A DNA stretch of 64,000 nt, taken from assembly GCF_020745735.1 (NCBI RefSeq), contig NW_026867463.1, positions 1-64,000 on the forward strand, given 5' to 3'. This stretch comes from Hemiscyllium ocellatum (lineage: Eukaryota). Positions 5,452 through 61,200 of the stretch are shown here, one piece after another. Both the position numbers and the translations under genes were made by a program. A model generated the notes under the pieces. It was not told where the DNA came from, made no database searches, and saw only the letters and a program-made list of their open reading frames with translations. Numbering within the stretch: the first letter of the stretch is position 1; the number at the start of each line of letters is the position of its first letter.

Positions 5452-5843
5452 TTATTGACATGAATTAACAGTGTCCATCAGTGCAAGTGAAATGTTTACG
5501 AAACTCGGTTTACCGCTGGATTTATCGACTGTTCTGTTGATGATCTTCAATGGAATCGCTTCATGTCCCACCACACAGGAGTAAGAAGCACCGCTGGCCC
5601 ACTCCTCCGCTGTAATGGATAACAGGCTGTAGATGAAGAAGGAAGTGTTGGCACTCTCTGCCATCACCTCGGTGTTCTTGTAGTTACTGGGATTCACCGG
5701 CTTGTCATTGTTTGTCCACTTGACGAAGATCTCTCGGGGGGAGAAACCTCTCACTAAACAGGTGAGGGAGAGAAACCTCTGTGCGGAGATTTCTTCTGTT
5801 GGTGGCAGGAGGACTGACACTGATGGCTCCAGCGGATTAATCA
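5452..5843 (-). CDS. IGHM: IgM CH4 exon plus secretory tailpiece
   Basis: (V)[14 protein letters not shown]...[17 protein letters not shown]...[43 protein letters not shown], a C1-set domain with a shark mu tailpiece (N-glycan site, penultimate Cys). Acceptor ctgcag|; internal donor AGC G|gtaaac after 5514 for splicing to TM1. Confidence 0.96.
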
Positions 5844-6290: not shown

Positions 6291-6599
6291 CTTTCTCCTT
6301 GTGGATGGAGTCTCTCAGCGGAGTCGGTAGATTTTGATGGTTCACCACACATTCAAAAGTAACACCACTCAGCCAGGCTTCAGTAGAAATGTCTAATTTG
6401 CTGATCACGCTGTCGGGAGTCTGTCCAGGCTGGTCAGCAATCTCTGAGCTCAGAGGCTTCTTATCTTGTTTCCAGGTCACGCTGACTCCAGGAAGAAAAT
6501 TGGACACAACGCAGGTTAACGTCACCGTCGCTTCCAGTAAGACTTGTTCGATTGGCGGTGGGAGGATTTTAACGGTGTGAGGGTGGCACTCGGTATCTT
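6291..6599 (-). CDS. IGHM: IgM CH3 exon
   Basis: (E)[32 protein letters not shown]...W...[22 protein letters not shown]. 309 nt, phase 1-1, catag| and G|gtgag boundaries. Confidence 0.95.
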
Positions 6600-8579: not shown

Positions 8580-8891
8580 CCTGGAGTGCGGTGATGTTTT
8601 TACTTTGAATGTTCTCTTCGTGAGTGACCTGGCAGGTATAGACTGCGCTGTTGTACCATTCACCATAAGGGACCATCAGCCGACTCGTCACCGAGAAGTT
8701 CCCGTTCGCCTCACACACGGGAGACGTGAAGAAGCCAGAATCCAAGCGTCGGCCATTTTTCAACCAAGTCACGTTGATTGCCTTCGGATGGAAATCGATG
8801 ATTGAACAAACGACAGTTGCAAACTTGCTGCTTGCGATTTCTTCACTGGAGCTCACAGTTAGGAGAAGAGTTGGTGGGAGAGGACCTGTAC
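8580..8891 (-). CDS. IGHM: IgM CH2 exon
   Basis: (G)[46 protein letters not shown]...[20 protein letters not shown]. 312 nt, phase 1-1, cctaaag| and G|gtaag boundaries. Confidence 0.95.
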
Positions 8892-11997: not shown

Positions 11998-12303
11998 CAC
12001 ATGGCATTTCTTTGCTCTTGTGAGACCCGCTGTGTTGAACCTCACAGTAGATTTTGCTGGGGCAATCTACCGCTGACCCGGGCAGGGTTAACTGGCTGCT
12101 CAGGGTGTAGGTTCCCTTCTTGTTTCTCACTGATGGGTAAGTCTTCAATCCACCATTCGTGATTAGCACCCCACCTTTCTTCCAGGTTACCTTGGTGACG
12201 TCTGGGGAATAGTCCATCACCAAACAACCAAAGATTGTCGAACCGGTGCTGTGCTCCTCACAGGAGGAGACCAGGCCATAAAGCGTGGGGGGAGATGGTG
12301 TCT
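11998..12303 (-). CDS. IGHM: IgM CH1 exon
   Basis: (E)[44 protein letters not shown]...[17 protein letters not shown]...[18 protein letters not shown]. 306 nt, attgtag| acceptor and G|gtacgt donor; the N-terminal extra Cys (light-chain link, by inference) is retained. Confidence 0.95.
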
Positions 12304-20028: not shown

Positions 20029-21637
20029 GAGTTCATGAGTGGATTACTTTAATTAATTCGAAATTTGGTTGGTCACATAATTCACTAGAGCAGTTGTTTC
20101 CTGAAGAATGACTCTTCAGTTGATATTTTGTTGTAAAATGTAACTATTTATTTAAAATGCACAGATTGGGAACACCTAAAGCACTGTGCAGGTTAAATAA
20201 TTCAGTTAATGTTTTATTTTTATCCTGCAAATCCAGTTTAATCAGGGACATAACAATTAATTAACTCAAGTTATATGTGAAACTGATCAAAGCAGTGAAA
20301 CTGATCTGTTCTTCATAGAATTGAGCAGAATTTCCAAATGGTCTTTGCCAATGATCTTTTCCAGCCAGAAAAATATGTATGTAGTGTACAGCGGAATTGA
20401 AAGGTGTTTCTTGATCAATTATAGCACAGTCATGGTATTTTTGCTCAAGAGCAAGAACAATTAGAACATTCGACTTTTGAAATTCTATTTATATTTCTCT
20501 ATGACTTGTAAACTGTTTAAAGACAGACCTTGTGATTGAACTAGATAGTTGAGTTTCGAATTTGGATTGTAAAGCATGGATTAGATTAATCCTTAATTAT
20601 TTATTTTAAGTAAAAATAGCACCTGAAGGTATCTGTTTTCCCTTCATTTCTAAAACCTGTGCGATTTGCCTTTCACTTTATCATAGACTTTATGAAATTT
20701 TAACTCGCATGCTGATTGCATTGAATGAGGAAAGAGCAGTTCACTGTCACCAACCGTGTTAACATTGCAAAAACAATGTAGAAACCAGAAACGGTTTCCC
20801 AAATATAACACATTTAATGTTACCCAAGCACAGTCCCTCCTCAACAGATCAACGATCACCAGATCACAACACGGTATGTTTGCAGCAGAACTAGCTCTGC
20901 AAACATTTTCGACAGAACCAAGGACATGATGTCACCTCACAAATAAAACCAAATTGAAGTCTAACAAAGCTGCTCAGAATCAAGCAAACTAATGATTAAA
21001 TTGAATAGAAATAACAGGTCATAATAGCAACCTTGTTTTGAGGGGACTTAACACTTAAAGCTGTAACGTTTCTGGCAATAGTTCAATTTATTTCTAACCT
21101 GCACACCCTTCCTGATCATGACAATCTTGTGCAGCGCACAGTAGAGTGGGGTTGAAGGCATATATTGATTAATCACCTCATGGTCAAAACAAAATTACTG
21201 AATGGACAAATATTACCACATTATAATTTTAAGTTAGTTTCAATTACGTGATCTGATCAATTCTGCAGTTTCAGATTTAGGTCCCAAATTTTATTTTGAA
21301 TGAGGCTACTCAAACAAAATTCAGTTCGTTTACAATTAGAACGGAGTTTTTTTTTAAAAGTCAATCCATTAAAAACTCGTTTTTTTTTCATTTCTCACAC
21401 ATCTGGGTTTCTGCCTTAAGTTGTTTTTCAGACCGTTACAAATGGATGTAATGTTTTCAATCAAGCAGAGAAAAATATGTCATATAAGTTTAACAAATGC
21501 AGAAATGATTCATGAAAAACAAAAGAACTTCACAAATATTGGTAATGAAAAGTATTCCAGAGAGTCAATCTCCTCACCAGAAAGAAAACTTCGATTCAGA
21601 AAGCATGAAAACGCAGATCAATTTCACAAACTGAATA

Positions 21638-21920
21638 AGAATCCAATCAACTCAATTCAACAGAATCAAGGAAAATAAAATCAGAATCCAATCAACTCAA
21701 AACAACAGATTTGAATGAAACATAATCAGAATCCAACCAATTCAATTCAACAGAATCAAATAAAACAATTTCAAAAGTCAATCAACACAATTCAACAAAA
21801 CCAAGTAAAAACAAAGTCAGAATCCAATCAACACAGTTCAACCCGAATCAACTAAAACAAAGCCAAAATCCAATCAACTCAATTCAACAGTAAAACAAAC
21901 TCCGAATCTAATCAACAGAA
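21638..21920. repeat. Degenerate ~45-bp tandem repeat in the J-C intron
   Basis: About 7 copies of agaatccaatcaactcaattcaacagaatcaa..aaaa..aaatc, strongly A/C-rich on the plus strand. Confidence 0.8.
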
Positions 21921-22434
21921 TGCAATATAGCACCGCAAGAAACTTTGATGACAGTTTCTAACCTGCTTGTCATCAACAAAATTAACAAAATAAATGAGAA
22001 AATATAATCATGGTAAGAACATATATTCAAGAAATGAATAATGATATTTTAGCATATTTTAGTCATGTTTGGTAATATCTTGAACATCTATGAATTCGTA
22101 GCATTTGTTGTTGATAATAAAACTCACAGTCAGGGTGTCACTGACATTAAACATTATTTATAGCTGACTGATTAAGAGACATTAGGTGTTTCAAGTAACC
22201 CAGCCACATAGAATGTCCATCTGATCAAAAAAAAGAGATACACTGAGCAAATGACTCCATCATCACCATTTTAACTATTTGCTGAGCCTTAACTGAAGTC
22301 TATAATCAGTCTGAACAAAAATCAATCCGAACCAAACCAAACTCAGCACAGAATCTGAGTTTCATTTAATTCAGAAATTAGTCACATGAATGGAAAGTTT
22401 TTAAAAAGTCACTAAGAATGTTCAAAGTTCTTAC

Positions 22435-22493
22435 CTGAAGTCACTGTCACCATGGTCCCTTGGCCCCAGTAATCAAGATAGTACCAGCTATAT
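22435..22493 (-). CDS. IGHJ: JH segment with a 5' D-like extension (probable pre-joined D-JH)
   Basis: A TAT AGC TGG TAC TAT CTT GAT TAC TGG GGC CAA GGG ACC ATG GTG ACA GTG ACT TCA G|gtaag = YSWYYLDYWGQGTMVTVTS. WGQG motif and phase-1 donor match CH1. Confidence 0.9.
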
Positions 22494-22521
22494 CACTGTG
22501 AGACACGTTGTGTCAAATACT
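22494..22521 (+). promoter_or_regulatory. Recombination signal sequence with 12-bp spacer abutting D-JH
   Basis: Reading away from the coding end: CACTGTG (22494-22500), agacacgttgtg (12 nt), TCAAATACT (6/9 to ACAAAAACC). No nonamer-like sequence at a 22/23-nt spacing. Confidence 0.65.
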
Positions 22522-22824
22522 ATGACAGACTGTAAACTGTAAAATGCAAATAATTTCTTCACTTCCTAGAAAGCAGTGATTCAGACTCCTCTAAAAATGA
22601 TTTGGTGCATTATTTCAGCTTTTACTATTCATTGTATTTTGAAAGCTTGGAATACTTTTCCAGGTTTGGTCTGCATTTAACTTGACAATCAACACGAAGA
22701 AGGTAGAAAACAATTATACATTTGTACAAACTAGCACGACTGGATTGTGTTTAAATTGCATCTCACATTATTTCTCGCTCCTGCCACGGTAGAAATCACC
22801 AATTTGAGATAAATCCTTGTCAGT

Positions 22825-22862
22825 GGTTATTGTATGAGGATGTCGCTGTGCACAGCATTGTG
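22825..22862 (-). promoter_or_regulatory. Recombination signal sequence with 22-bp spacer 3' of VH(D)
   Basis: CACAATG (22862-22856), 22-nt spacer, ACAATAACC (22833-22825); one mismatch each to the consensus heptamer and nonamer. Confidence 0.85.
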
Positions 22863-23168
22863 ACCCACTTGCACAGTAATAGATGGCGGTGTCTTCGATC
22901 TTCAGGTTAGTCATCTCCAACGCGAAAATGTTCTTTGAAGTGTCTTTGGACGCACTAAATCGACCCTTAATCGCTGGTGCATAGTTATTGCTGGATGAAC
23001 TATAGTAGCTAACCAGCCACTCCAGACCCTGGCCGGGAACCTGGCGGACCCAGCTCATGTAGCTGCTGCTGAGATCGAACCCGCTGGTTTTACAGGTCAG
23101 TTTCAGGCTGCCTGAGGGACGGCCAGTCTCTGCCTCTGGCTGGGTCAAAACAACCTCCGACTGGACAC
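22863..23168 (-). CDS. IGHV: IgM-type VH exon (end of leader plus V domain, possibly with a joined D1 remnant)
   Basis: (C)[101 protein letters not shown]. Conserved Cys, WVRQ and YYC; open frame; tttaaag| acceptor. Confidence 0.95.
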
Positions 23169-23273
23169 CTTTAAAAAAGACAAGAAATAAACCATGAGCA
23201 TTACTTTTACATTCCTGAGGTAGACTAACATTGAGACAGCAACAAAGACAGACTTAAACAAAAAAACACTCAC

Positions 23274-23322
23274 ATGATAAGAAAGTCAGTAATAAACTGA
23301 GAAAAATTGTCGACACAATCAT
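23274..23322 (-). CDS. IGHV: VH leader exon
   Basis: ATG...MIVSTIFLSLLLTFLS + T|gtgag. 49 nt; 105-nt intron to the V exon; phase 1 gives Cys-Val-Gln-Ser. Confidence 0.92.
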
Positions 23323-42869: not shown

Positions 42870-44050
42870 ACATTAGCTTTGACAATGTGGAGACTGTATG
42901 GGTGGAGCTGTGAAATACCAAGGGACAAAAAACATTAGTGGGTGTCATAGACAGACCCCTAGACTGCAGTGGTCGTATCGGAATAGTATTAAACAGGAAA
43001 TTAGACAAGCATGTGATATGGAGACATCTGTGACCATGGGTGATTTTAATCTGCATCTAGATTGGACAAATCAAATTAGCCACAATGTCTTAGAGGAAAA
43101 ATTCCTGGAGTACATACAGGATGGTTTTCTTAACCAATATGTGGATGAACCAACTAGAGAGCAGGCCATCTTAGACTGGGTACTGTGTAATGAGAAGGGA
43201 ATCATTGCCAATCTAGCTGCGTGAGACTCCTTGGGGATGAGTGACCATGACATGATACAACTTTTTTTATCAAGATGGAGAGTGAGCCAGCTGATTTGGA
43301 GACTAGGGTGCTGAATTTTAATAAAGGAAACTATGAAGATATATAAGGCATGAGTTGGCGTTGATAGATCAGTGAAAGTTGCTTAAAGGTGTGCCAGTAG
43401 ATAGGCATTGGCAAATATTCAAGGAAATCATGGGGGAACTGCAACAACTATTTATTCCTGTCTGGTACAAAAGCAAAATGGGTAACAGGGCCAATCCATG
43501 GCTTATAAAGGAAATTAGATAGCATCCAATTGAAGGAAATAGCATAGAAATGGGCCAAGAAAAATAACAGGTCTGATATTTGAGAGCAGTTTCGAATTCA
43601 GCAAAGAAGGACCAAGGGATTGATTAAGATGGGGAAAACACAGTACAAAAGAAAGTAAGCTTGCAGGGAACATGAAGACTGACGCTATAAGGTTCTACAG
43701 TACATGAAGAGAAAGAGATTGATGAAGACAAATGTTAGGTCCCTATAGATGGAAATTGGGGAAATGTATAACAAAGGACAACGAACAGCTGAGCAATTGT
43801 ATACATCCTTTAGTTCTGTCTTCACAAAAACTGACAGTTATACAGGAGGTGGGTGAGGCTGCAGTTGGAGCATGTGTTCTGTTTTGGTCACCTTGCTCGG
43901 GGAAGGATGTTATTAAACTGGAAAGAGTGCAGAAGAAATTTATAAGGATGTTGCTCGCACTCAGTGTTATAAGGAGAGGCTGAACAAGCTTTTTCTTTTC
44001 TTGGCAGTCTAGGAGACTGAGAGGGGATCTTATAGAACTGTACAAAATTA
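42870..44050 (+). mobile_element. CR1-type LINE fragments
   Basis: MGDFNLHLDW...FLEYIQDGFLNQYVDEPTREQAILDWVLCN endonuclease remnant, later KLERVQKKFIRML. Confidence 0.7.
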
Positions 44051-48121: not shown

Positions 48122-50556
48122 GAGAAAATGAGGACTGCAGGTGCTGGAGATCAGAGCTGAAAATCTGTTGCTGGAAAAGCGCAGTAGGTCAGGCAGCATC
48201 CAAGGAGCAGGAGAGTCGACGTTTTGGGCATGAGCCCTTCTTCAGGAATGAGGAAATGTGTCCATCAGGCTAAGATAAAAGGTAGGGAGGAGGGACTTGG
48301 GGGAGGTGCGTTGGAAATGCGATAGATGGAAGGAGGTCAAGGTGAGGGTGTTAGGCCAGAGTGGGGGTGGGGGCGGAGAGGTCAGGAAGAAGATTGCAGA
48401 TTAGGAGGCGGTGCTGAGTTCGAGGGATTTGACTGAGACAAGGTGGGGGGAGGGGAAATGAGGCAACTGGAGAAATCTAAGTTCATCCCTTGTGGTTGGA
48501 GGGTTCCTAGGAGGAAGATTAGGCGCTCTTCCTCCAGCTGTCGTGTTGCTATGGTCTGGCGACAGAGGAGTCCAAGGACCTGCATGTCCTTGGTGGAGTG
48601 GGAGGGAGAGTTGAAGCGTTGAGCCACGGGGTGGTTGGGTTGGTTGGTTCGGGTGTCGCAGAGGTGTTCTCTGAAACGTTCCGCAAGTAGGCAGCCTGTC
48701 TTCCTAATATAGAGGAGGCCCCATCGGGTGCAGTGGATGCAGTAAATGATGTGTGTGGAGGTGCAGGTGAATTTGTGGTGGATATGGAAGGATCCCTTGG
48801 GCCTTGGAAGGAAGTAAGGGGGGAGGCAATTTTGCATCTCTTGCAGTTGCAGGGGAAGGTGCCGGGAGTGGAGGTTGGGTTGGTGGGGGGTGTGGACCTG
48901 ATGAGGGAGTCACGGAGGGAATGGTCTTTTTAGAATGCTGATAGGGGAGGGGAGGGAAATATATCTCTGGTGGTGGGGTCTGTTTGGAGGTGGTGGAAAT
49001 GACAACGGATGATACGATGTATATGGAGGTTAGTGGGTGGTAGGTGAGGACCAGTGGGGTTCTGTCCTGATGGCGATTGGAGGGGTGGGGCTCAAGGGCA
49101 GAGGAGCGGGAAGTGGAGGAGATGGGGTGGAGGTCATATTCGATCACGTCTGGGGAGATATTGCAGTCTTTGAAGAAGGAGGCCATCTGGGCTGTACGGT
49201 ATTGGAACTGGTCCTCCTGGGAACAGATGCGGCGGAGACGAAGGAATTGGGAATATGGGATGGCGTTTTTACAGGGGGCAGGGTGGGAGGAGGCGTAGTC
49301 TAGGTAGTTGTGGGAGTCGGTCGGTTTATAGTAAATGTCCGCATTGATTCGGTTGCCTGAGATAGAAGGGGAAAGGTCTAGGAAGGGGAGGGAGGTGTCT
49401 GAGATGGTCCAGGTAAATTTGAGGTCGGTTGGTAAAGTGGATGAACTGTTCAACCTGCCTCCACGAGGCAGCGCCGATACAGTAATCAATGTAGCGGAGG
49501 AAAAGGTGGGGGGTGGTGCCAGTGTAGTTGCGGAAGATGGACTGTTCCACATATCCTACGAAGAGGCAGGCTTGGCTGGGGCCCATTCGGGTGCCCATGG
49601 CAACTCCTTTGTTTGGAGGAAGTGGGAGTGTTGGAAAGAGAAGTTGTTCAGGGTGAGGACCAGTTCAGTCAGTCGAAGGAGGGTGTCAGTGGAAGGGTAC
49701 TGGTTGGTACGGCGGGAAAGGAAGAAGCGGAGGGCTTTGAGTCCTTCATGATGGAGGATGGGGGTGTACAGGGACTGGATGTCCATGGTGAAGATAAGGC
49801 GTTGGGGACCGGGGAAGCGAAAATCATAGAGGAGGTGGAGGGCGTGGGTGGTGTCCCAAACGTAGGTGCGGAGTTCTTGGACTAAGGGGGACAGGACCAT
49901 GTCGAGGTATGCAGAGATGAGTTCGGTGGGGCAGGAGCAGGCTGAGACAATGGGTCGGCCGGGGCAGTCAGGTTTGTGGATTTTGGGCAGGAGGTAGAAA
50001 CGGGCAGTGCGGGGTTGTGGGACTCTGAGTTTGGAGACGGTGGATGGGAGATTCCCTGAGGTGATGAGGTTATGGATGGTCTGGGAGATGATGGTTTGGT
50101 GGTTGGAGGTGGGGTCATGGTCAAGGGGGCAGTAAGAGGAGGTGTCCACAAGCTGGCGTTTAGCCTCAGCGGTGTAAAGGTCGGTGCGCCAAACTACTAC
50201 CGCGCCTCCCTTGTCTGCCGGTTTGATGGTGAGGTTGGGGTTGGAGTGAAGGGAGTGGAGGGCTGCACGTTCTGAGGGTGAGAGGTTGGAGTGGGTGAGA
50301 GGGATGGAGAGGTTGAGGCGGTTAATGTCGCGGCGGCAGTTGGCTATGAAGTGATTGAGGGCAGGTAAGAGGCCAGCACAGGGTGTCCAGGTGGATGGGG
50401 TGTGTTGGAGGCGGGAGAAGGGGTCGTCAGAGGGTGGGCGAGAATCCTGGTTGAAGAAGTAGGCACGGAGGCGAAGGCGGCGGAAGAATTGTTCGATGTC
50501 TCGCCGCGTGTTGAACTCGTTAATCCGAGAGCGTAGGGGAATGAAGGTGAGGCCTT
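48122..50556 (-). mobile_element. Penelope-like retroelement (RT + GIY-YIG endonuclease + terminal repeat), frameshifted
   Basis: RTARFYLLPKIHKPDCPGRPIVSACSCPTE...FTMDIQSLYT; MGTRMGPSQACLFVGYVE...FLRYIDYC; LPFLDL...IYYKPTDSHNYLDYASSHP; FTCTSTHIIYCIHCTRWGLLYIRKT...ERFREH (GIY-YIG). Split over four ORFs. Confidence 0.92.
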
Positions 50557-50901: not shown

Positions 50902-51046
50902 NNNNNNNNNNNNNNNNNNNNNNNNNNNNNNNNNNNNNNNNNNNNNNNNNNNNNNNNNNNNNNNNNNNNNNNNNNNNNNNNNNNNNNNNNNNNNNNNNNN
51001 NNNNNNNNNNNNNNNNNNNNNNNNNNNNNNNNNNNNNNNNNNNNNN
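50902..51046. other. Assembly gap (145 N)
   Basis: Run of N. Confidence 1.
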
Positions 51047-53721: not shown

Positions 53722-56700
53722 GAAAAAAAAGGTCAGTACTGAGGGAGTGCCACACTGTTGGAGGGTCAGTGATACGTTAGTGTTGCACTATCAGAGGATC
53801 TGTACTGAAGAAAAGCTGCACTGTCAGATTGTCAATACTGAAGGATTGCTGGACTGTCAGAGGGTCAGTTAGGATGGAGTGCTGCACTGTCAGAGGGTCA
53901 GTACTGAGGGAGTGCTGCACTGTCAGAGAATCAGTATTGAGGGAGTGCTGCACTGTCTGAGTGTCAGTCCCAAGGAAAGGCCACACTGTCAGAGGTCAGT
54001 AACGAGGGAGGACCGCACTGTCAGTGGGTCATTACTGAGTGAGTGCTGTACTGTCAGAGGGTCAGTACTGAGTGAGTGCTGTACTGTCAGAGGGTCTGTA
54101 CTGATGGAGTGCCGCACTGTCAGAGGATCAGTCCTGAGGGTGCGCTACACTGTCAGAGGGTCAGTACAAAACGAGCACTGCACTGTCAGAGGGTCAGTAC
54201 TGAGGGAGTGCTTCACTGTCAGAGATTCAGCATAGATGGAGTGCTGCACTGTCAGAGGGTCAGTACTGAGGGAGTGCTGCACTGTCAGAGGGTCAGTACT
54301 GAGGGAAAGTTGCACTGTCAGAGGGTCAGTACTGAGGGAAAGTTGCACTGTCAGAATGTCAGTACCGAGGGAGTGCTGTACTGTCAGGGAGTGAGTGCTT
54401 AGGCAGTGCTGCACTGTGAGAGGGTCTGTAATGAGGGAGTGTTGCACTGGCAGAAGGTCATCATGCAGTGAGCACTCCACTGTCAGAGGGTCATTGCTGA
54501 GGGAGTGCCACTCTGTGGAGAGTGAGTACTAAGTTAATGTTGCAGTCGGAGGATCAGTAAATAGGCAAACCTGCACTATCAGAGGATCAGTACTGGGGGG
54601 CGCAACACTGCCGGACCTTCAGTACTGAGGGAGTGCTGCACTGTCAACGGGTCAGAGCAAAATGAGCGCTGCACTGTTGCAAGGTCATTACTGTGGGAGC
54701 ACAACATTATCGGAGCATAAGTACTAAGGGAGCACTAAATTGTCAGAAGAACAGTATTGAGAGAATTCCACCCTGTCAGAGGTGCTGTAGTGAGGAAGTG
54801 CTGCATTATCAGAGGGTCAGTATTGAGGGAGCACTATTGAGGGAATGCCACCCTGTCAGAGGTTCTGTAGTGAGGGAGTGCGACACTGTCAAAGGGTCAG
54901 TACTGAGGGAGTGCAATACTGTCAAGGGTCAGTGCTGAGGAGGCGCTGCACTGTCAGAGGGTCAGTACTGAGTGAGTGCTGCACTGTTAGAGGGTCAGTA
55001 CTGTGGGTCCATTGGAATGTCAGAGGGTGAGAATAGATGGAATACCGCACTGTCAGAGTTTCATTACAGTGCAGTGCCACACTGTCAGAGAGTCACTACT
55101 GGGGGAGTGCTTCACTGTCAGAGGGGCAGTACCGAGAGAGTGTCACACTGTTGGAAGGTCAGTACTGAGGGAGTGGCACACTGTCAGGGAGTGAGTAATG
55201 AGGGAGTGCCACACTGTTGGTTGGTCAGTACTGTGGGTGTATCGGAATGTCGGAGGGTCAGAAGGGAGGGAATACCGCACTGTCAGAGTTTCATTACAGT
55301 GCAGTGCCAAACTGTCAGAGTGTCACTACAGGGGGAGTGCTTCTCTGACAGAGGGGCAGTACTGAGAGAGTGTCACACTGTCAGAGGGTCAGTACGAATG
55401 GAGTGCTGCACTCTCGGAGTGTCAGAAGTGAGGGAACTCCACGCTGTCAGAGTGTCAGCATAGACAGAGTGCTGCACTGTCAGAGGATCAGTACTGAGTG
55501 TGTGCTGCACTGTTAGAAGGTCAGTACTGGGGGAGTGCAGCACTGTCAGAGGTTCAGTATGTGGGAGTGCAACACAATTAAAGTGTCAGTACTGAGGGAG
55601 TGCTGCATTGGCAGAGGGTCAGAACTGACAAAACACCGCACTGTCAGAGGGTCAGTACTGAGGGACTGCTGCACTGTCAGAGGGTCAGTACTGAGGGCGT
55701 TCTGCACTGTCAGAATGTCAGTACTAAGGGAATGCCGCACTGTCGGAAGGTCAGCACCGAGGGAGGTCCACATTGTCTGAGGGTCTTCACTGAATGAGTA
55801 CTGCAATGTCAGTGGGTCAGTACTCAGGAAAAGCTGCACTGTCAGAGGTTCTTTAATGGAAGAGTGCTGCACTGTCAGAGGGTCAATACCAAGGGAGTGT
55901 TGCAATGTCAGAGGGTCAGTACTGATGGAGTGCTGCAACATGAGAGGATCAGTACTGAGGAGCACTCCACTGTCAGAGGGTCTGTACTGAGGGAGCACTA
56001 TACTGTGAAAGAGTCAGTACCGAGGGAATGCTGCACTGTCAAAGGGTCAGTACCGAGGGAGTGCTGCACTGTCAGAGGGTCAGTACTGAGGGAGTGCTGC
56101 ACTGTCAGAGAATCAGTATTGAGGGAGTGCTGCACTGTCTGAGTGTCAGTCCCAAGGAAAGGCCACACTGTCAGAGGTCAGTAACGAGGGAGGACCGCAC
56201 TGTCAGTGGGTCAGTACTGAGTGAGTGCTGTACTGTCAGAGGGTCTGTACTGATGGAGTGCCGCACTGTCAGAGGATCAGTCCTGAGGGTACGCTACACT
56301 GTCAGAGGGTCAGTACAAAACGAGCACTGCACTGTCAGAGGGTCAGTACTGAGGGAGTGCTTCACTGTCAGAGATTCAGCATAGATGGAGTGCTGCACTG
56401 TCAGAGGGTCAGTACTGAGTGTGTGCTGCACTGTCAAAGGGTCAGTGCCAAGGGAGTGCTGCAGTGTCAGAGCGTTAGTACTGAGGGAGTGCTGCACTGT
56501 CAGAGGGTCAGTACTGAGGGAGTGCTGCATTGCCAGAGGGTCAGTGTCAAAGGCACACCGCACTGTCAGAGGTTCAGTACTGAGGGAGTGCTTCACTGTC
56601 AGGGATTCAGCATAGATAGAGTGCTGCACTATCAGAGGGTCAGTACTGAGTGTGTGCTGCACTGTTGAAGGGTCAGTACTGAGGGAGTGCTGCACTGTCA

Positions 56701-58916
56701 GAGGGTCAGTGCCAAAGACACACCGCATTGTCGGAGGTTCAGAACTGAGGGAGTGCTCACTCTGCGAGAGCAATGATGAGGGAGGGCCACATTGTCAGCC
56801 GGTCAGTACTGAGGGAGTTCTGCACTGTCAGAGGGTCAGTACTGAGGGAGTTCTGCACTATCAGAGGGTCAGTACTGAGGTAACGTCGCACTGTCCGAAG
56901 TTCAGTCTGGAGGGAGTGCCGCACTGTCAGAGGCTCAGTGCTGAGGGACTGTTGCACTGTCAGAGGGTCGGTATGGAGTGAGTGCTATGCTGTCAGAGGG
57001 TCTGTACCAAAGGAGTGTCACAATGTCACAGGATCAGTCCTGGGGGAGTGCCACACTGTCGGAGGGTCTGTACTGATGGAGCACTGTACTGTCAGAACAT
57101 CAGTACTGAGTGTGCACGATATTGTCAGAGGGTCAGGACTGAGGGAAAGCTGCACTGTCAGAGGAGCAGTACTAATAGATTGCTACACTGTCAGCGGGTC
57201 AGCACCAAGTGAGCGCTGCATCGTAAGAGGGTCTGTATTGAGAGAGTGCTGCGCTGTCAGAGGGTCTGGACAGAGGGAGCGCTATACTGTCAGAGGGTCG
57301 GTACTGAGGGAGTGCTGCACTGTCTGAGTGTCAGTCCAGGGGAAGGCCACACTGTCAGAGCGTCAGTAATGTGGGAGAACCGCGCAGTCGGTAGGTCGGT
57401 AATGAGGGAGTATCGCATCGTCAGAAGATCAGTCCTGAGGGCATGCTACACTGAGAGAGAGTCAGCACAAAACGAGCACTGCACTTTTGGAGGGTCATTA
57501 CTCAGGGAGAAAACACTGTCAGAGAGTCAGTGCAGAAGGAGTGCTGCACTGTCAGAGGGTCAGTACTGAGGGAGCACTGCACCGTCAAAGGTCAGTACTG
57601 AGGATGTGCTGCATTGTCAGAGGGTCAGTACTGAGGGAGTGCTGCACTGTCAGAGGGTCAGTACTGAGGGAGCGCTGCACCGTCAAAGGTCAGTACTGAG
57701 GGAGTGCTGTACTGTCAGAGGGTCAGTACTGAGGGAGCACTGCACCGTCAAAGGTCAGTACTGAGGATGTGCTGCACTGTCAGAGGGTCAGTACTGAGGG
57801 AGTGCTGCACTGTCAGAGGGTCAGTACTGAGGGAGCGCTGCACCGTCAAAGGTCAGTACTGAGGGAGTGCTGCACTGTCAGAGGGTCAGTACTAAGGGAG
57901 TGTTGCACTGTCAGAGGTTCAGTACTGAGGGAGCGGTGCACTGTCAGAGGGTCAGTACTGAGGGAGTGCTGCACTGTCAGAGGTTAAGTCCTCAATGAAT
58001 GCCACCTTGCCAGAGGGTCAGTACTGAGGGAGCATTGCACCATCAGAGGGTCAGTACTGAGGGACCGCTACATTGCCAGAGTGATAGTACTGAGGGAGTA
58101 CTGTACTGTCAAAGGTTCAGGACTGAGGGAGTGCTGCACTGTCAGAGGTGCAGGACAGAGGGTGTTGTCGCACTGTCGGTGTCAGTACTGATAGAATGCC
58201 GCACTGTTGGAGTGTCATCACTGACGAAGGGCCTCACTGTCAGGAGTTTAGTACTGAGGGAGGGCCGCACTGTCAGGAGTTTAGTTCTGAGGGAGGGCCG
58301 CACTGTCAGGAGTTTAGTACTGAGGGAGGGCTGCACTGTCAGGAGTTTAGTTCTGAGGGAAGGCCGCACTGTCAGGAGTTTAGTTCTGAGGGAGGGCCGC
58401 ACTGTCAGGAGTTTAGTACTGAGGGAGGGCCGCACTGTCAGGAGTTTAGTACTGAGGGAGGGCTGCACTGTCGGAAGGACAGCACTCAGGTAGTGCAGCA
58501 CTATCAAAGGGTCAGTACTGAGTGAGTGGTGCACTATCAGAGGGTCAGTACTGTAGGTGTGTTGCAATGTCAGCAGTTTATTACTGTGGGAGTTCCACAC
58601 TGTCAGAGGATCAATGGTGACGGAGCTCCGTACTGTCAGTGGGTCAGTACTGAGGGAGTGCTGCACTGTCATAGGGTCAGTACTGAGTGAGCACTACTGT
58701 TTCAATTAGTCAGTACTGAGAGAGTGTCAGTACTGAGGGAGTGCCTCACTGTTGGAGGGTCAGTACTGCTGGAGCACTGCACTGTCAGAAGATCAGGACT
58801 GAATGTGCGCTCCATTGTCAGAGGATCAGTATTGAGGGAGCATTGCACTGCCAGAGGTTAGGACTGACAGAATGCACCAATGCCAGAGGGTCAGTACTGA
58901 GGGAACGCTGCAATGT
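53722..58916. repeat. 33-bp tandem satellite, ~5.2 kb
   Basis: Consensus agggtcagtactgagggagtgctgcactgtcag; accounts for all the 11-aa periodic ORFs (VLHCQRVSTEG, RECCTVRGSVL, STDPLTVQHSL). Confidence 0.95.
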
Positions 58917-61200
58917 CATCTGACATCTGTCCTATATCTATCATCCCTAAAGTTAAAGCTATGCCCCCTCATACTCGCCATCACCATACTTGGATAAAGG
59001 TTCTCCCTTCCACTCTGCCTAACCCTCTGATTATCTTATATGTCTCTATTAAGTCACCTCTCAACCTTCTTCTCTCTAACGAAAACAGCATCACGTCCCT
59101 CAGCCTTTCCTCGAAAGACCTTCCCTCCATACTAGGCAACACCCTCGTGAATCCCCTCTGCACCCTTTCCAAAGCTTCCACATCCGTCTTATAATGTGGT
59201 GACCAGAACTGTACACAATATTCCAAGTGCAGCCGCACCAGAGCTTTGTACAGCTGTAGCATAACCTCATGGTTCCGGAACTCGATCCCTCTATTAATAA
59301 AAGCTAAAACACTGTATGCCTCCTTAACAACCCTGTCAACCTGGGTGGCAACTTTCAAGGACCTGTGTACCTGGACACCGAGGTGTCTCTGCTCATCTAC
59401 ACTGCCAAGAATCTTACCATAAGTCCAGTACTTTGCATTCCGGTTACTCTGACCAAAGTGAATCACCTCAGACTTGTCCGCAATAAACTCCACTTGCCAC
59501 CTCTCTGCCCAGCTCTGCAGCTTATCTATGTCTCTCTGTAACAACAACATCCTTCGTCCCTATCCACAACTCCACCGACCTTAGTGTCATCTGCAAATTT
59601 ACTAACCCACCCTTCTACACCCTCATCCAGGTCGTTTATAAAAAAGACGAACAGCAGTGGACCCAACACCGACCCTTGCAGTACATGACTGGTAACTGGA
59701 CTCTAGGATGAACATTTCCCATCAACCATCACCCTCTGTCTTCTTTCAGCAAGCCAATTACTGATCCAAACTGCTAAATCTCCCACAATCCCATTCCTCT
59801 GCATTTTGTACAATAGCCTACAGTGGGGAACCTTATCAAACGCCTTGCTGAAATCAATATACGCCACGTCAACCAATTTAATCTCATCTACCTGTTTGGT
59901 CACCTTCTCAAAGAACTCAATAATGTTTGTGAGGCACGACCTACCCTTCACAAAACCGTGCAGACTATCCGTAATCAAATTATTCTTTTCTAGATGATTA
60001 TACATCTTATCTCTTATAACCTTTTCCAACAACTGAAGTAAGACTCACTGGTCTATAATTACCAGGGTTGACTCTACTCCCTTTCTTGAACAGGGGAACC
60101 ACATTTGCTATCCTCCAGTCCTCAGGCACTATTCCTATAGACAATGATGATTTGAAGATCAATGCCAAAGGCTCAACAATCTCCTCCCTGGCTTCCCAGA
60201 GAATCCTAGGATAAATCCCATCATCAGGCCCAGTAGACTTATCTATTTTCACATTCTGCAGGATTTCCAATACCTCTTCCTTGTGAACCTCAATCTCACC
60301 TAGTCAAGTAGCCTGTATCTCAGTAATCTCCTCGATAACACTGTCTTTTTCTAGAGTGAATACTGTCGAAAAATATTCATTTAGTGCTTCCCCTATCTCC
60401 TCTGACTCCACACACAACTTCCCACTCCTATCCTTGATTGGCCCTAATCTTACTCTTGTCATTCTTTTATTCCTTAAATACCTATAGAAAGCCTTAGGGT
60501 TTACCGTGATCCTATCCTCCAACAACTTCTCATGTCTCCACCTGGCTCTGCCGAGCTCTCTCTTTAGGTCTTCCCTGTCTACCATGTAACCCTCAAGTGC
60601 CCTGCCTGAGCGTTCACATCTCATCCTAACTTAAGCCTTCTCCTTCCTCTTGACCAGAGATTCCACTTCCTTCGTAAACCACGGCTCTTGCGCTCTACAG
60701 CTTCCTCCCTGCCTGACAGGTACATACTTATCTAGGACACACAGGAGCCTTTCCTTGAACAAGCTCCACATTTCTAATGTGCCCATCCCCTGCAGTTTCC
60801 TTCCCCATCCTATGCTTCCTAAACCTTGCCTAATCGCATTGTAATTGCCTTTCCCCCAGCTGTAACTCTTGCCCAGTGGTATACACCTATCCCTTTCTAT
60901 CACTAAAATAAACACAACAGAATTGTGATCGCTATCACCAAAGTGCTCACCTCCTTCCAAGTCTAACACCTGGCCGGGCTCAATACCCAGTACCAAATCT
61001 AATATGGCTTCGCCCCTTACTGGCCTGTCTACTGTGTCAGGAAGCCCTCCTGCACACACTGGACAAAAACTGACCCATCTATAGGACTGGTACTGTAGTG
61101 TTTCCAGCCAATATTTGGAAAGTTGAAGTCCCCCGTGACAACTACCCTGTCTCTCTCACTCCTATCGAGAATCATCTTTGCTATCCTTTCCTCTACAACT
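58917..61200 (-). mobile_element. CR1-type LINE ORF2 (endonuclease C-terminus + RT), frameshifted, 3'-truncated at the satellite
   Basis: PTREAILDLVLG..GDSDHNSV; GPDDGIYPRILWE...DWRIANVVPLFKKG...NYRPVSLTS; HGFVKGRSCLTN...YIDFSKAFDKVPH; [19 protein letters not shown]...LERVQRGFTR. Confidence 0.92.

Follow-up and report, generated by a model that had tools for sequence, protein, structure and literature searches.

A shark IgM cluster that is very probably VD–DJ joined in the germ line, with a single D1–D2 rearrangement step left

An IgM heavy-chain cluster in which only one interval separates V from J raises the question of which gene segments have already been joined, what joined them, and what is left for a lymphocyte to rearrange. 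We analysed such a cluster within a 64-kb stretch of shark DNA (hereafter the window) and compared it with related clusters in other shark assemblies. We found that it is very probably a part-joined germline VD–DJ cluster of a hemiscylliid-type shark, in which RAG has joined V to D1 and D2 to J and has left one D1–D2 step to be made.

On its minus strand the window holds a single complete IgM cluster, made up of a leader, V, a J-side block, Cmu1–4, a secretory tail and TM1. From leader to TM1 the cluster spans about 20 kb on a single strand, the organisation of a cartilaginous-fish IgM cluster, and no second Ig cluster was found anywhere in the window. The leader exon (23274–23322), read directly, starts with an ATG at 23322, ends in phase 1 and is followed by a gt donor at 23273–23272. 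The next exon (22863–23168), in which V is fused to the 3′ end of D1, matches the Pfam V-set domain (E = 3e-17) and was assigned by comparison with two clusters of the brownbanded bamboo shark (Chiloscyllium punctatum), L001 and L004; it ends TAT TAC TGT GCA AGT GGG T, with the last base at 22863. CDR1 of this V reads SSSYMS and CDR2 reads SYYSSSSNN. The exon in which D2 is fused to J (22435–22493) is 59 nt long, with a gt donor at 22434. Cmu1 (11998–12303), Cmu2 (8580–8891) and Cmu3 (6291–6599) each have an open frame between in-phase ag/gt boundaries and match the C1-set domain (E = 1e-14, 9e-19 and 7e-14, respectively). Cmu4 (5452–5843; C1-set E = 5e-22) runs into the secretory tail, a stop codon and an overlapping AATAAA. 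The TM1 exon of the membrane form (2556–2683) is open between ag/gt boundaries and encodes a hydrophobic stretch (...WTTASTFITLFFLSIFYSAAVTLVKV). All exons of the cluster are therefore open, with splice sites that match in phase, and the claim of the first-pass annotation to this effect is borne out by the frames, the boundaries and the V-set and four C1-set matches. Upstream of the leader, the window cluster and C. punctatum clusters share a conserved TATA region and promoter block, and a canonical octamer upstream of V is absent both from the window cluster and from the relatives compared.

Two recombination signal sequences (RSSs) remain between V and J. The one behind the V-side exon (22825–22862, minus strand) consists of the heptamer CACAATG (22862–22856), a 22-nt spacer (22855–22834) and the nonamer ACAATAACC (22833–22825), and the one ahead of the J-side exon (22494–22521, minus strand) consists of the nonamer AGTATTTGA (22521–22513), a 12-nt spacer (22512–22501) and the heptamer CACAGTG (22500–22494). 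The heptamer-to-heptamer distance is 355 bp (22501–22855), and the excisable piece is 369 bp (22494–22862). When both strands of the whole 64 kb were scanned for RSSs, only the V-side signal had an 8/9 nonamer; the nonamer of the J-side signal matches at six of nine positions. No hidden D segment was found within the 355-bp interval, and no CACNGTG or CACAGT-type heptamer on either strand; the sole near-match is one weak CACAATC. No 22/23-spacer RSS adjoins J in the window cluster. The first-pass annotation had described just this arrangement: a single V–J interval of 355 bp without internal heptamers, a 22-spacer signal on the V side, a 12-spacer signal with a weak nonamer on the J side, and a J without a 22/23 RSS of its own. 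Every one of these details was confirmed at the locus.

To which segments do the two signals belong? Relatives were sought by a protein search with the V domain, which returned 27 matches, and the genomic loci of six matches were fetched. The closest relatives are from C. punctatum, the best at 88% identity. Our comparators, the C. punctatum clusters L001 (BEZZ01001580.1) and L004 (BEZZ01002017.1), belong to another assembly and probably another species, and both have the conventional V–D1–D2–J layout. Their V ends in TGTGCAAGAGAC, rather than AGTGGGT, and is followed by its own 23-spacer RSS. D1 reads ATACTACAGTGGGT in L001 and ATGCGACAGCGGGT in L004, and is flanked by CATTGTG on its 5′ side and by CACAGTG, a 22-nt spacer and ACAA(A/T)AACC on its 3′ side. 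D2 starts with ATATA(G/A)CTG behind AGTATTTGA-CACAACGTGTCT-CACAGTG, and J starts with ACTATCTTGA behind its own 23-spacer RSS.

By BLAST and three-way alignment, the window is colinear with L001 and L004 at 89–94% identity save for two deletions; the colinear stretch reaches some 3 kb ahead of the leader in L004 and beyond 8 kb into the J–C intron in L001. As far as TGTGCA, V is 92% identical to L001 and 90% identical to L004, and L001 and L004 are themselves 91.8% identical. The three clusters are thus roughly equidistant, which makes the window cluster another member of the same IgM subfamily. Both conventional comparators are damaged, L001 lacking the D2 3′ RSS and L004 carrying a frameshift in V along with a mutated V heptamer. 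Compared with L004, L001 is missing, at L001:11295–11320, the 3′ half of D2 along with its 12-spacer RSS and some 190 bp of the D2–J interval, so that D2-to-J joining is no longer possible there under the 12/23 rule. The frameshifted V exon of L004 (L004:10176–10490), with its V heptamer of CGCAGCG, is probably a pseudogene.

The two deletions correspond to exactly the pieces that V-to-D1 and D2-to-J joining would remove. The first comprises the V–D1 interval together with the V 23-RSS and the D1 5′ 12-RSS, and corresponds to L001 10480–10918; the second comprises the D2–J interval together with the D2 3′ 12-RSS and the J 23-RSS, and corresponds to L001 11305–11504. What the window has kept is the 22-spacer RSS on the 3′ side of D1 and the 12-spacer RSS on the 5′ side of D2, which face each other across the D1–D2 interval. 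The body of that interval (22522–22824) was assigned by its similarity to its counterparts in L001 and L004, and BLAST pairs the interval with that between D1 and D2 in a related shark cluster (E = 3e-166); the whole 369-bp piece is 93.2% identical to L001 and 94.7% identical to L004. The spacer of the D1 3′ RSS shares 20 of its 22 bases with L001 and L004, and its nonamer is identical to that of L004. On the coding side, AGTGGGT is the 3′ end of the L001 D1 (ATACTACAGTGGGT), which is followed by a 22-spacer RSS like that in the window, and ATATAGCTG is the 5′ end of D2, which lies behind an identical 12-spacer RSS in the comparators.

These alignments bear directly on the assignments made in the first-pass annotation. 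Its suggestion that AGTGGGT is a D1 3′ end is upheld by the L001 D1 and the 22-spacer signal behind it, and its assignment of the remaining signals to D1-3′ and D2-5′ agrees with the alignment to L001 and L004. It had also proposed a check against unrearranged clusters, and this favours VD1–D2J, since V in those clusters does not end AGTGGGT and J opens with ACTATCTTGA, preceded by a 23-spacer RSS. The alternative that it had entertained, an unjoined V facing a pre-joined D–D–J or D–J block, is refuted by the same comparison. A 22/23-spacer signal after V would be expected of an unjoined V as well, but the V-side spacer and nonamer, together with all of the 355 bp that follow, belong to the D1 3′ side and do not resemble the V 23-RSS of L001 and L004; moreover, the 7 nt before the heptamer are the D1 3′ end, and the V end has lost the AGAC found at conventional V ends. 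As the V-side signal belongs to D1, we consider this alternative excluded and give it virtually no probability. We also rejected the idea of a lineage that normally has a single D per cluster, as the closest relatives carry the full V–D1–D2–J set. By alignment with its relatives, then, the window cluster is VD1–D2J, with V–D1 and D2–J joined and D1 and D2 still split.

In the three-way alignment both breaks coincide exactly with coding ends, and neither joint retains any part of an RSS. At the V–D1 junction, V retains TGTGCAAG and has lost about 4 nt, D1 retains AGTGGGT and has lost about 7 nt, and the two overlap by 2 nt (AG), with no N bases. At the D2–J junction, D2 retains ATATAGCTG(G), a remnant of 9–10 nt from which about 5 nt have been lost, and J is untrimmed and of full length. 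The (G)T before J forms a GT|AC palindrome, as 1–2 P nucleotides would, and here too N bases are absent. The coding block from 22493 to 22435 accordingly reads ATATAGCTGGT followed by ACTATCTTGATTACTGG...TCAG, that is, ATATAGCTG(G), (G)T as P nucleotides and the untrimmed J ACTATCTTGATTAC TGG GGC CAA GGG ... TCA G, and its translation in the J frame is YSWYYLDYWGQGTMVTVTS.

With their trimmed ends, a P-type palindrome at the untrimmed J and a lack of both RSS remnants and N bases, the two junctions look RAG-made. A different origin would be an assembly artefact, in which read collapse or mis-joining had stripped two intervals from a conventional cluster. IgM clusters are multicopy and about 90% alike, and are hard for assemblers; nevertheless, both deletions begin and end exactly at coding ends and each removes precisely two RSSs, the flanks share no repeat beyond 2 nt, and the D2–J joint carries a P-type palindrome. 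Read collapse does not make RAG-type coding joints twice within 430 bp, and we regard an artefact as extremely improbable.

If RAG made the joins, it could have acted in lymphocytes or in germ cells. VD–DJ is known as a true intermediate of somatic rearrangement in nurse shark B cells and thymocytes (PMC2435157), and the assembled copy might derive from lymphocyte or thymocyte DNA that had undergone two rearrangements (2R), with V–D1 and D2–J joined and D1–D2 not yet joined. For such a copy to form the consensus of a contig of at least 64 kb, however, the cells would need to be clonally dominant. N additions are usual in somatic shark joins and scarce in germ-cell joins, and the germ-cell joins of the nurse shark have trimmed ends, P nucleotides and no N bases (Lee et al., PMC2193156); neither window junction has any N addition. 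Part-joined and fully joined clusters are present in other shark assemblies too. A somatic origin is accordingly very unlikely in our judgement, and we infer that RAG acting in the germ line made both joins.

In the germline reading, the history of the cluster would have started from a conventional V–D1–D2–J cluster of the subfamily to which L001 and L004 belong. Two RAG-type deletional joins, V to D1 and D2 to J, would each have removed one interval and two RSSs. The partners that are left, the D1 22-spacer RSS and the D2 12-spacer RSS, face each other in deletional orientation and would support the normal D1–D2 step. A single RAG cut-and-join in a lymphocyte would then excise the 369 bp from 22494 to 22862 and yield a VDDJ exon in which only the central junction is variable, flanked by a hard-wired CASG and a hard-wired YSWYYLDYW. 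Each of the two coding ends contributes one surplus base, so that a precise join is out of frame and a net change of +1 or −2 nt is required. After a +1 join the product is C-ASG-X-YSWYYLDY-W, in which 12 residues separate C from W, and the arithmetic of the earlier prediction on both points is correct.

Both of the remaining signals are below consensus. The D1-side heptamer is CACAATG in the window and CACAGTG in the comparators, differing at position 5; it is the first three heptamer bases that matter most for RSS function. The D2 5′ RSS is identical in the window, L001 and L004 at all 28 bases, with the surrounding DNA differing by 5–8%. The weakness of its 6/9 nonamer is therefore the norm for this family rather than a sign of decay, since the whole 28-nt signal is the same in both conventional comparators, and the signal may be under constraint, as it is invariant in three clusters while its flanks vary.

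These observations also bear on the possibility that the cluster is a silent relic, an inherited germline VD–DJ locus that is rarely or never rearranged or expressed and whose semi-hard-wired antibody has no role. The sub-consensus signals would fit such a relic, and the damage in both of the closest C. punctatum relatives indicates that the subfamily tolerates decay. On the other hand, every coding part has an open frame and good splice sites, the three clusters share an unchanged D2 12-RSS, the promoter block is conserved, and joined nurse shark genes are expressed early in life (PMC2193156; PMC4279169). We consider a silent relic possible but doubtful. In the reading that we favour, the DNA would be germline, and the cluster would rearrange and be expressed.

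An additional feature of the D1–D2 interval is a perfect octamer, ATTTGCAT, at 22551–22544 on the minus strand, about 22 bp upstream of the nonamer of the D2 12-RSS. It probably arose by chance, as L001 and L004 have ATCTGCAT at this place.

How does the window cluster relate to joined clusters known from other sharks? The horned shark (Heterodontus francisci) reportedly has germline-joined VH loci of the VD–J and VDJ types (Kokubu et al. 1988, as cited in PMC2193156). As in the window, coding joints without RSSs are found in the horned shark, whose genome mixes split and joined heavy-chain clusters; the forms cited for it are VD–J and VDJ, whereas in the window both outer joins have been made and the inner one is left. 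More generally, the review 'Fish Immunoglobulins' names VD–DJ among the germline part-joined forms of shark IgM (PMC5192425). The forms that it lists (VD–J, VD–DJ and VDJ) share with the window cluster the isotype, the cluster organisation, the VD–DJ layout and the explanation by RAG in germ cells, and there is no difference in kind: the window provides a specific cluster in a hemiscylliid-type genome. The somatic 2R VD–DJ of the nurse shark (Malecek et al. 2008, PMC2435157) has the identical configuration, with the same D1–D2 step left, but it occurs in B cells and thymocytes and is not inherited, whereas the window configuration lies in an assembled genome and lacks N bases. Germline VD–J and VDJ forms have been described with a proposed role in early life (PMC4279169). 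The fully joined neonatal IgM1gj of the nurse shark is likewise germline-joined with a hard-wired CDR3 and a proposed early-life role (PMC4279169, PMC5192425); it needs no rearrangement and is without Cmu2, whereas the window cluster has still to make one join and carries Cmu1 to Cmu4.

Further pre-joined clusters were found in public assemblies of related orectolobiform sharks. Four C. punctatum clusters are VDD–J (L002:11640–12130; L002:1690–2320, reverse strand; L003:10420–10920; and L005:10420–10920), and the two on L002 lie head to head on one contig. Each of the four has a fused V–D1–D2 block, behind which come CACTGCA or CACGGCA, a 12-nt spacer and a nonamer; J, with a 23-spacer RSS, lies about 350–400 bp beyond this 12-spacer signal. 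Like the window VD–DJ, the VDD–J clusters have one step left, but they keep the D2 3′ 12-RSS and the J 23-RSS, which places the variable junction beside J, whereas in the window it falls in the middle of CDR3. In the chromosome assembly of the whale shark (Rhincodon typus NC_063338.1), a cluster at L006:10465–10540 is fully joined VDJ (TGTGCAAGAGACTGGGGTGGCTCACTCCATTACTGGGGACAAGAAACC...). No orthologous VD–DJ cluster was found in other species, the loci of the six V-domain matches being conventional, VDD–J or VDJ.

The window cluster is a clean example of a pre-joined class already described in sharks, and on its own it adds an example rather than a principle. Part-joined clusters preserve a natural record of RAG activity in germ cells and serve as natural experiments on how much junctional diversity a heavy chain needs. 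The present case is unusually clean, as the conventional relatives show exactly which bases each join lost. Thirty-seven IgM clusters have been counted in C. plagiosum, with join states not given (PMC8692893), and we found no genome-wide catalogue of join states, for a hemiscylliid-type or any other shark genome, in the searchable literature. Much of the value of the present cluster would lie in such an inventory (V–D–D–J, VD–D–J, V–DD–J, VD–DJ, VDD–J, V–DDJ and VDJ) for one chromosome-level shark genome.

A more speculative reading is that VD–DJ in this species represents an expanded and selectively kept subfamily of 'one-step' heavy-chain genes, as opposed to a sporadic accident. We think this unlikely. 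If it were true, these genes would rearrange in the manner of light chains, with diversity confined to the centre of CDR3, and perhaps provide a fast, semi-innate IgM repertoire early in life. Junctions shared among the copies would point to one ancient join followed by duplication, and different junctions to repeated RAG activity in germ cells.

In the J–Cmu1 intron of the window, a 45-bp tandem repeat (21634–21890; unit AATCAGAATCCAATCAACTCAATTCAACAGAATCAAATAAAACAA) is present in about 5.7 copies, and the intron around it aligns colinearly with the C. punctatum clusters. A run of 145 N bases occupies 50902–51046. Retroelement debris lies at 42898–43224, 48382–50149 and 58981–61059; the site at 42.9 kb has a weak Pfam match to an endonuclease-reverse transcriptase, below the curated cut-off, and the other sites have RT-like ORFs with no Pfam match at 1e-3. 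Finally, a 33-bp satellite array (53731–58691) of about 150 copies, with 71% matches, gives rise to long spurious ORFs on both strands.
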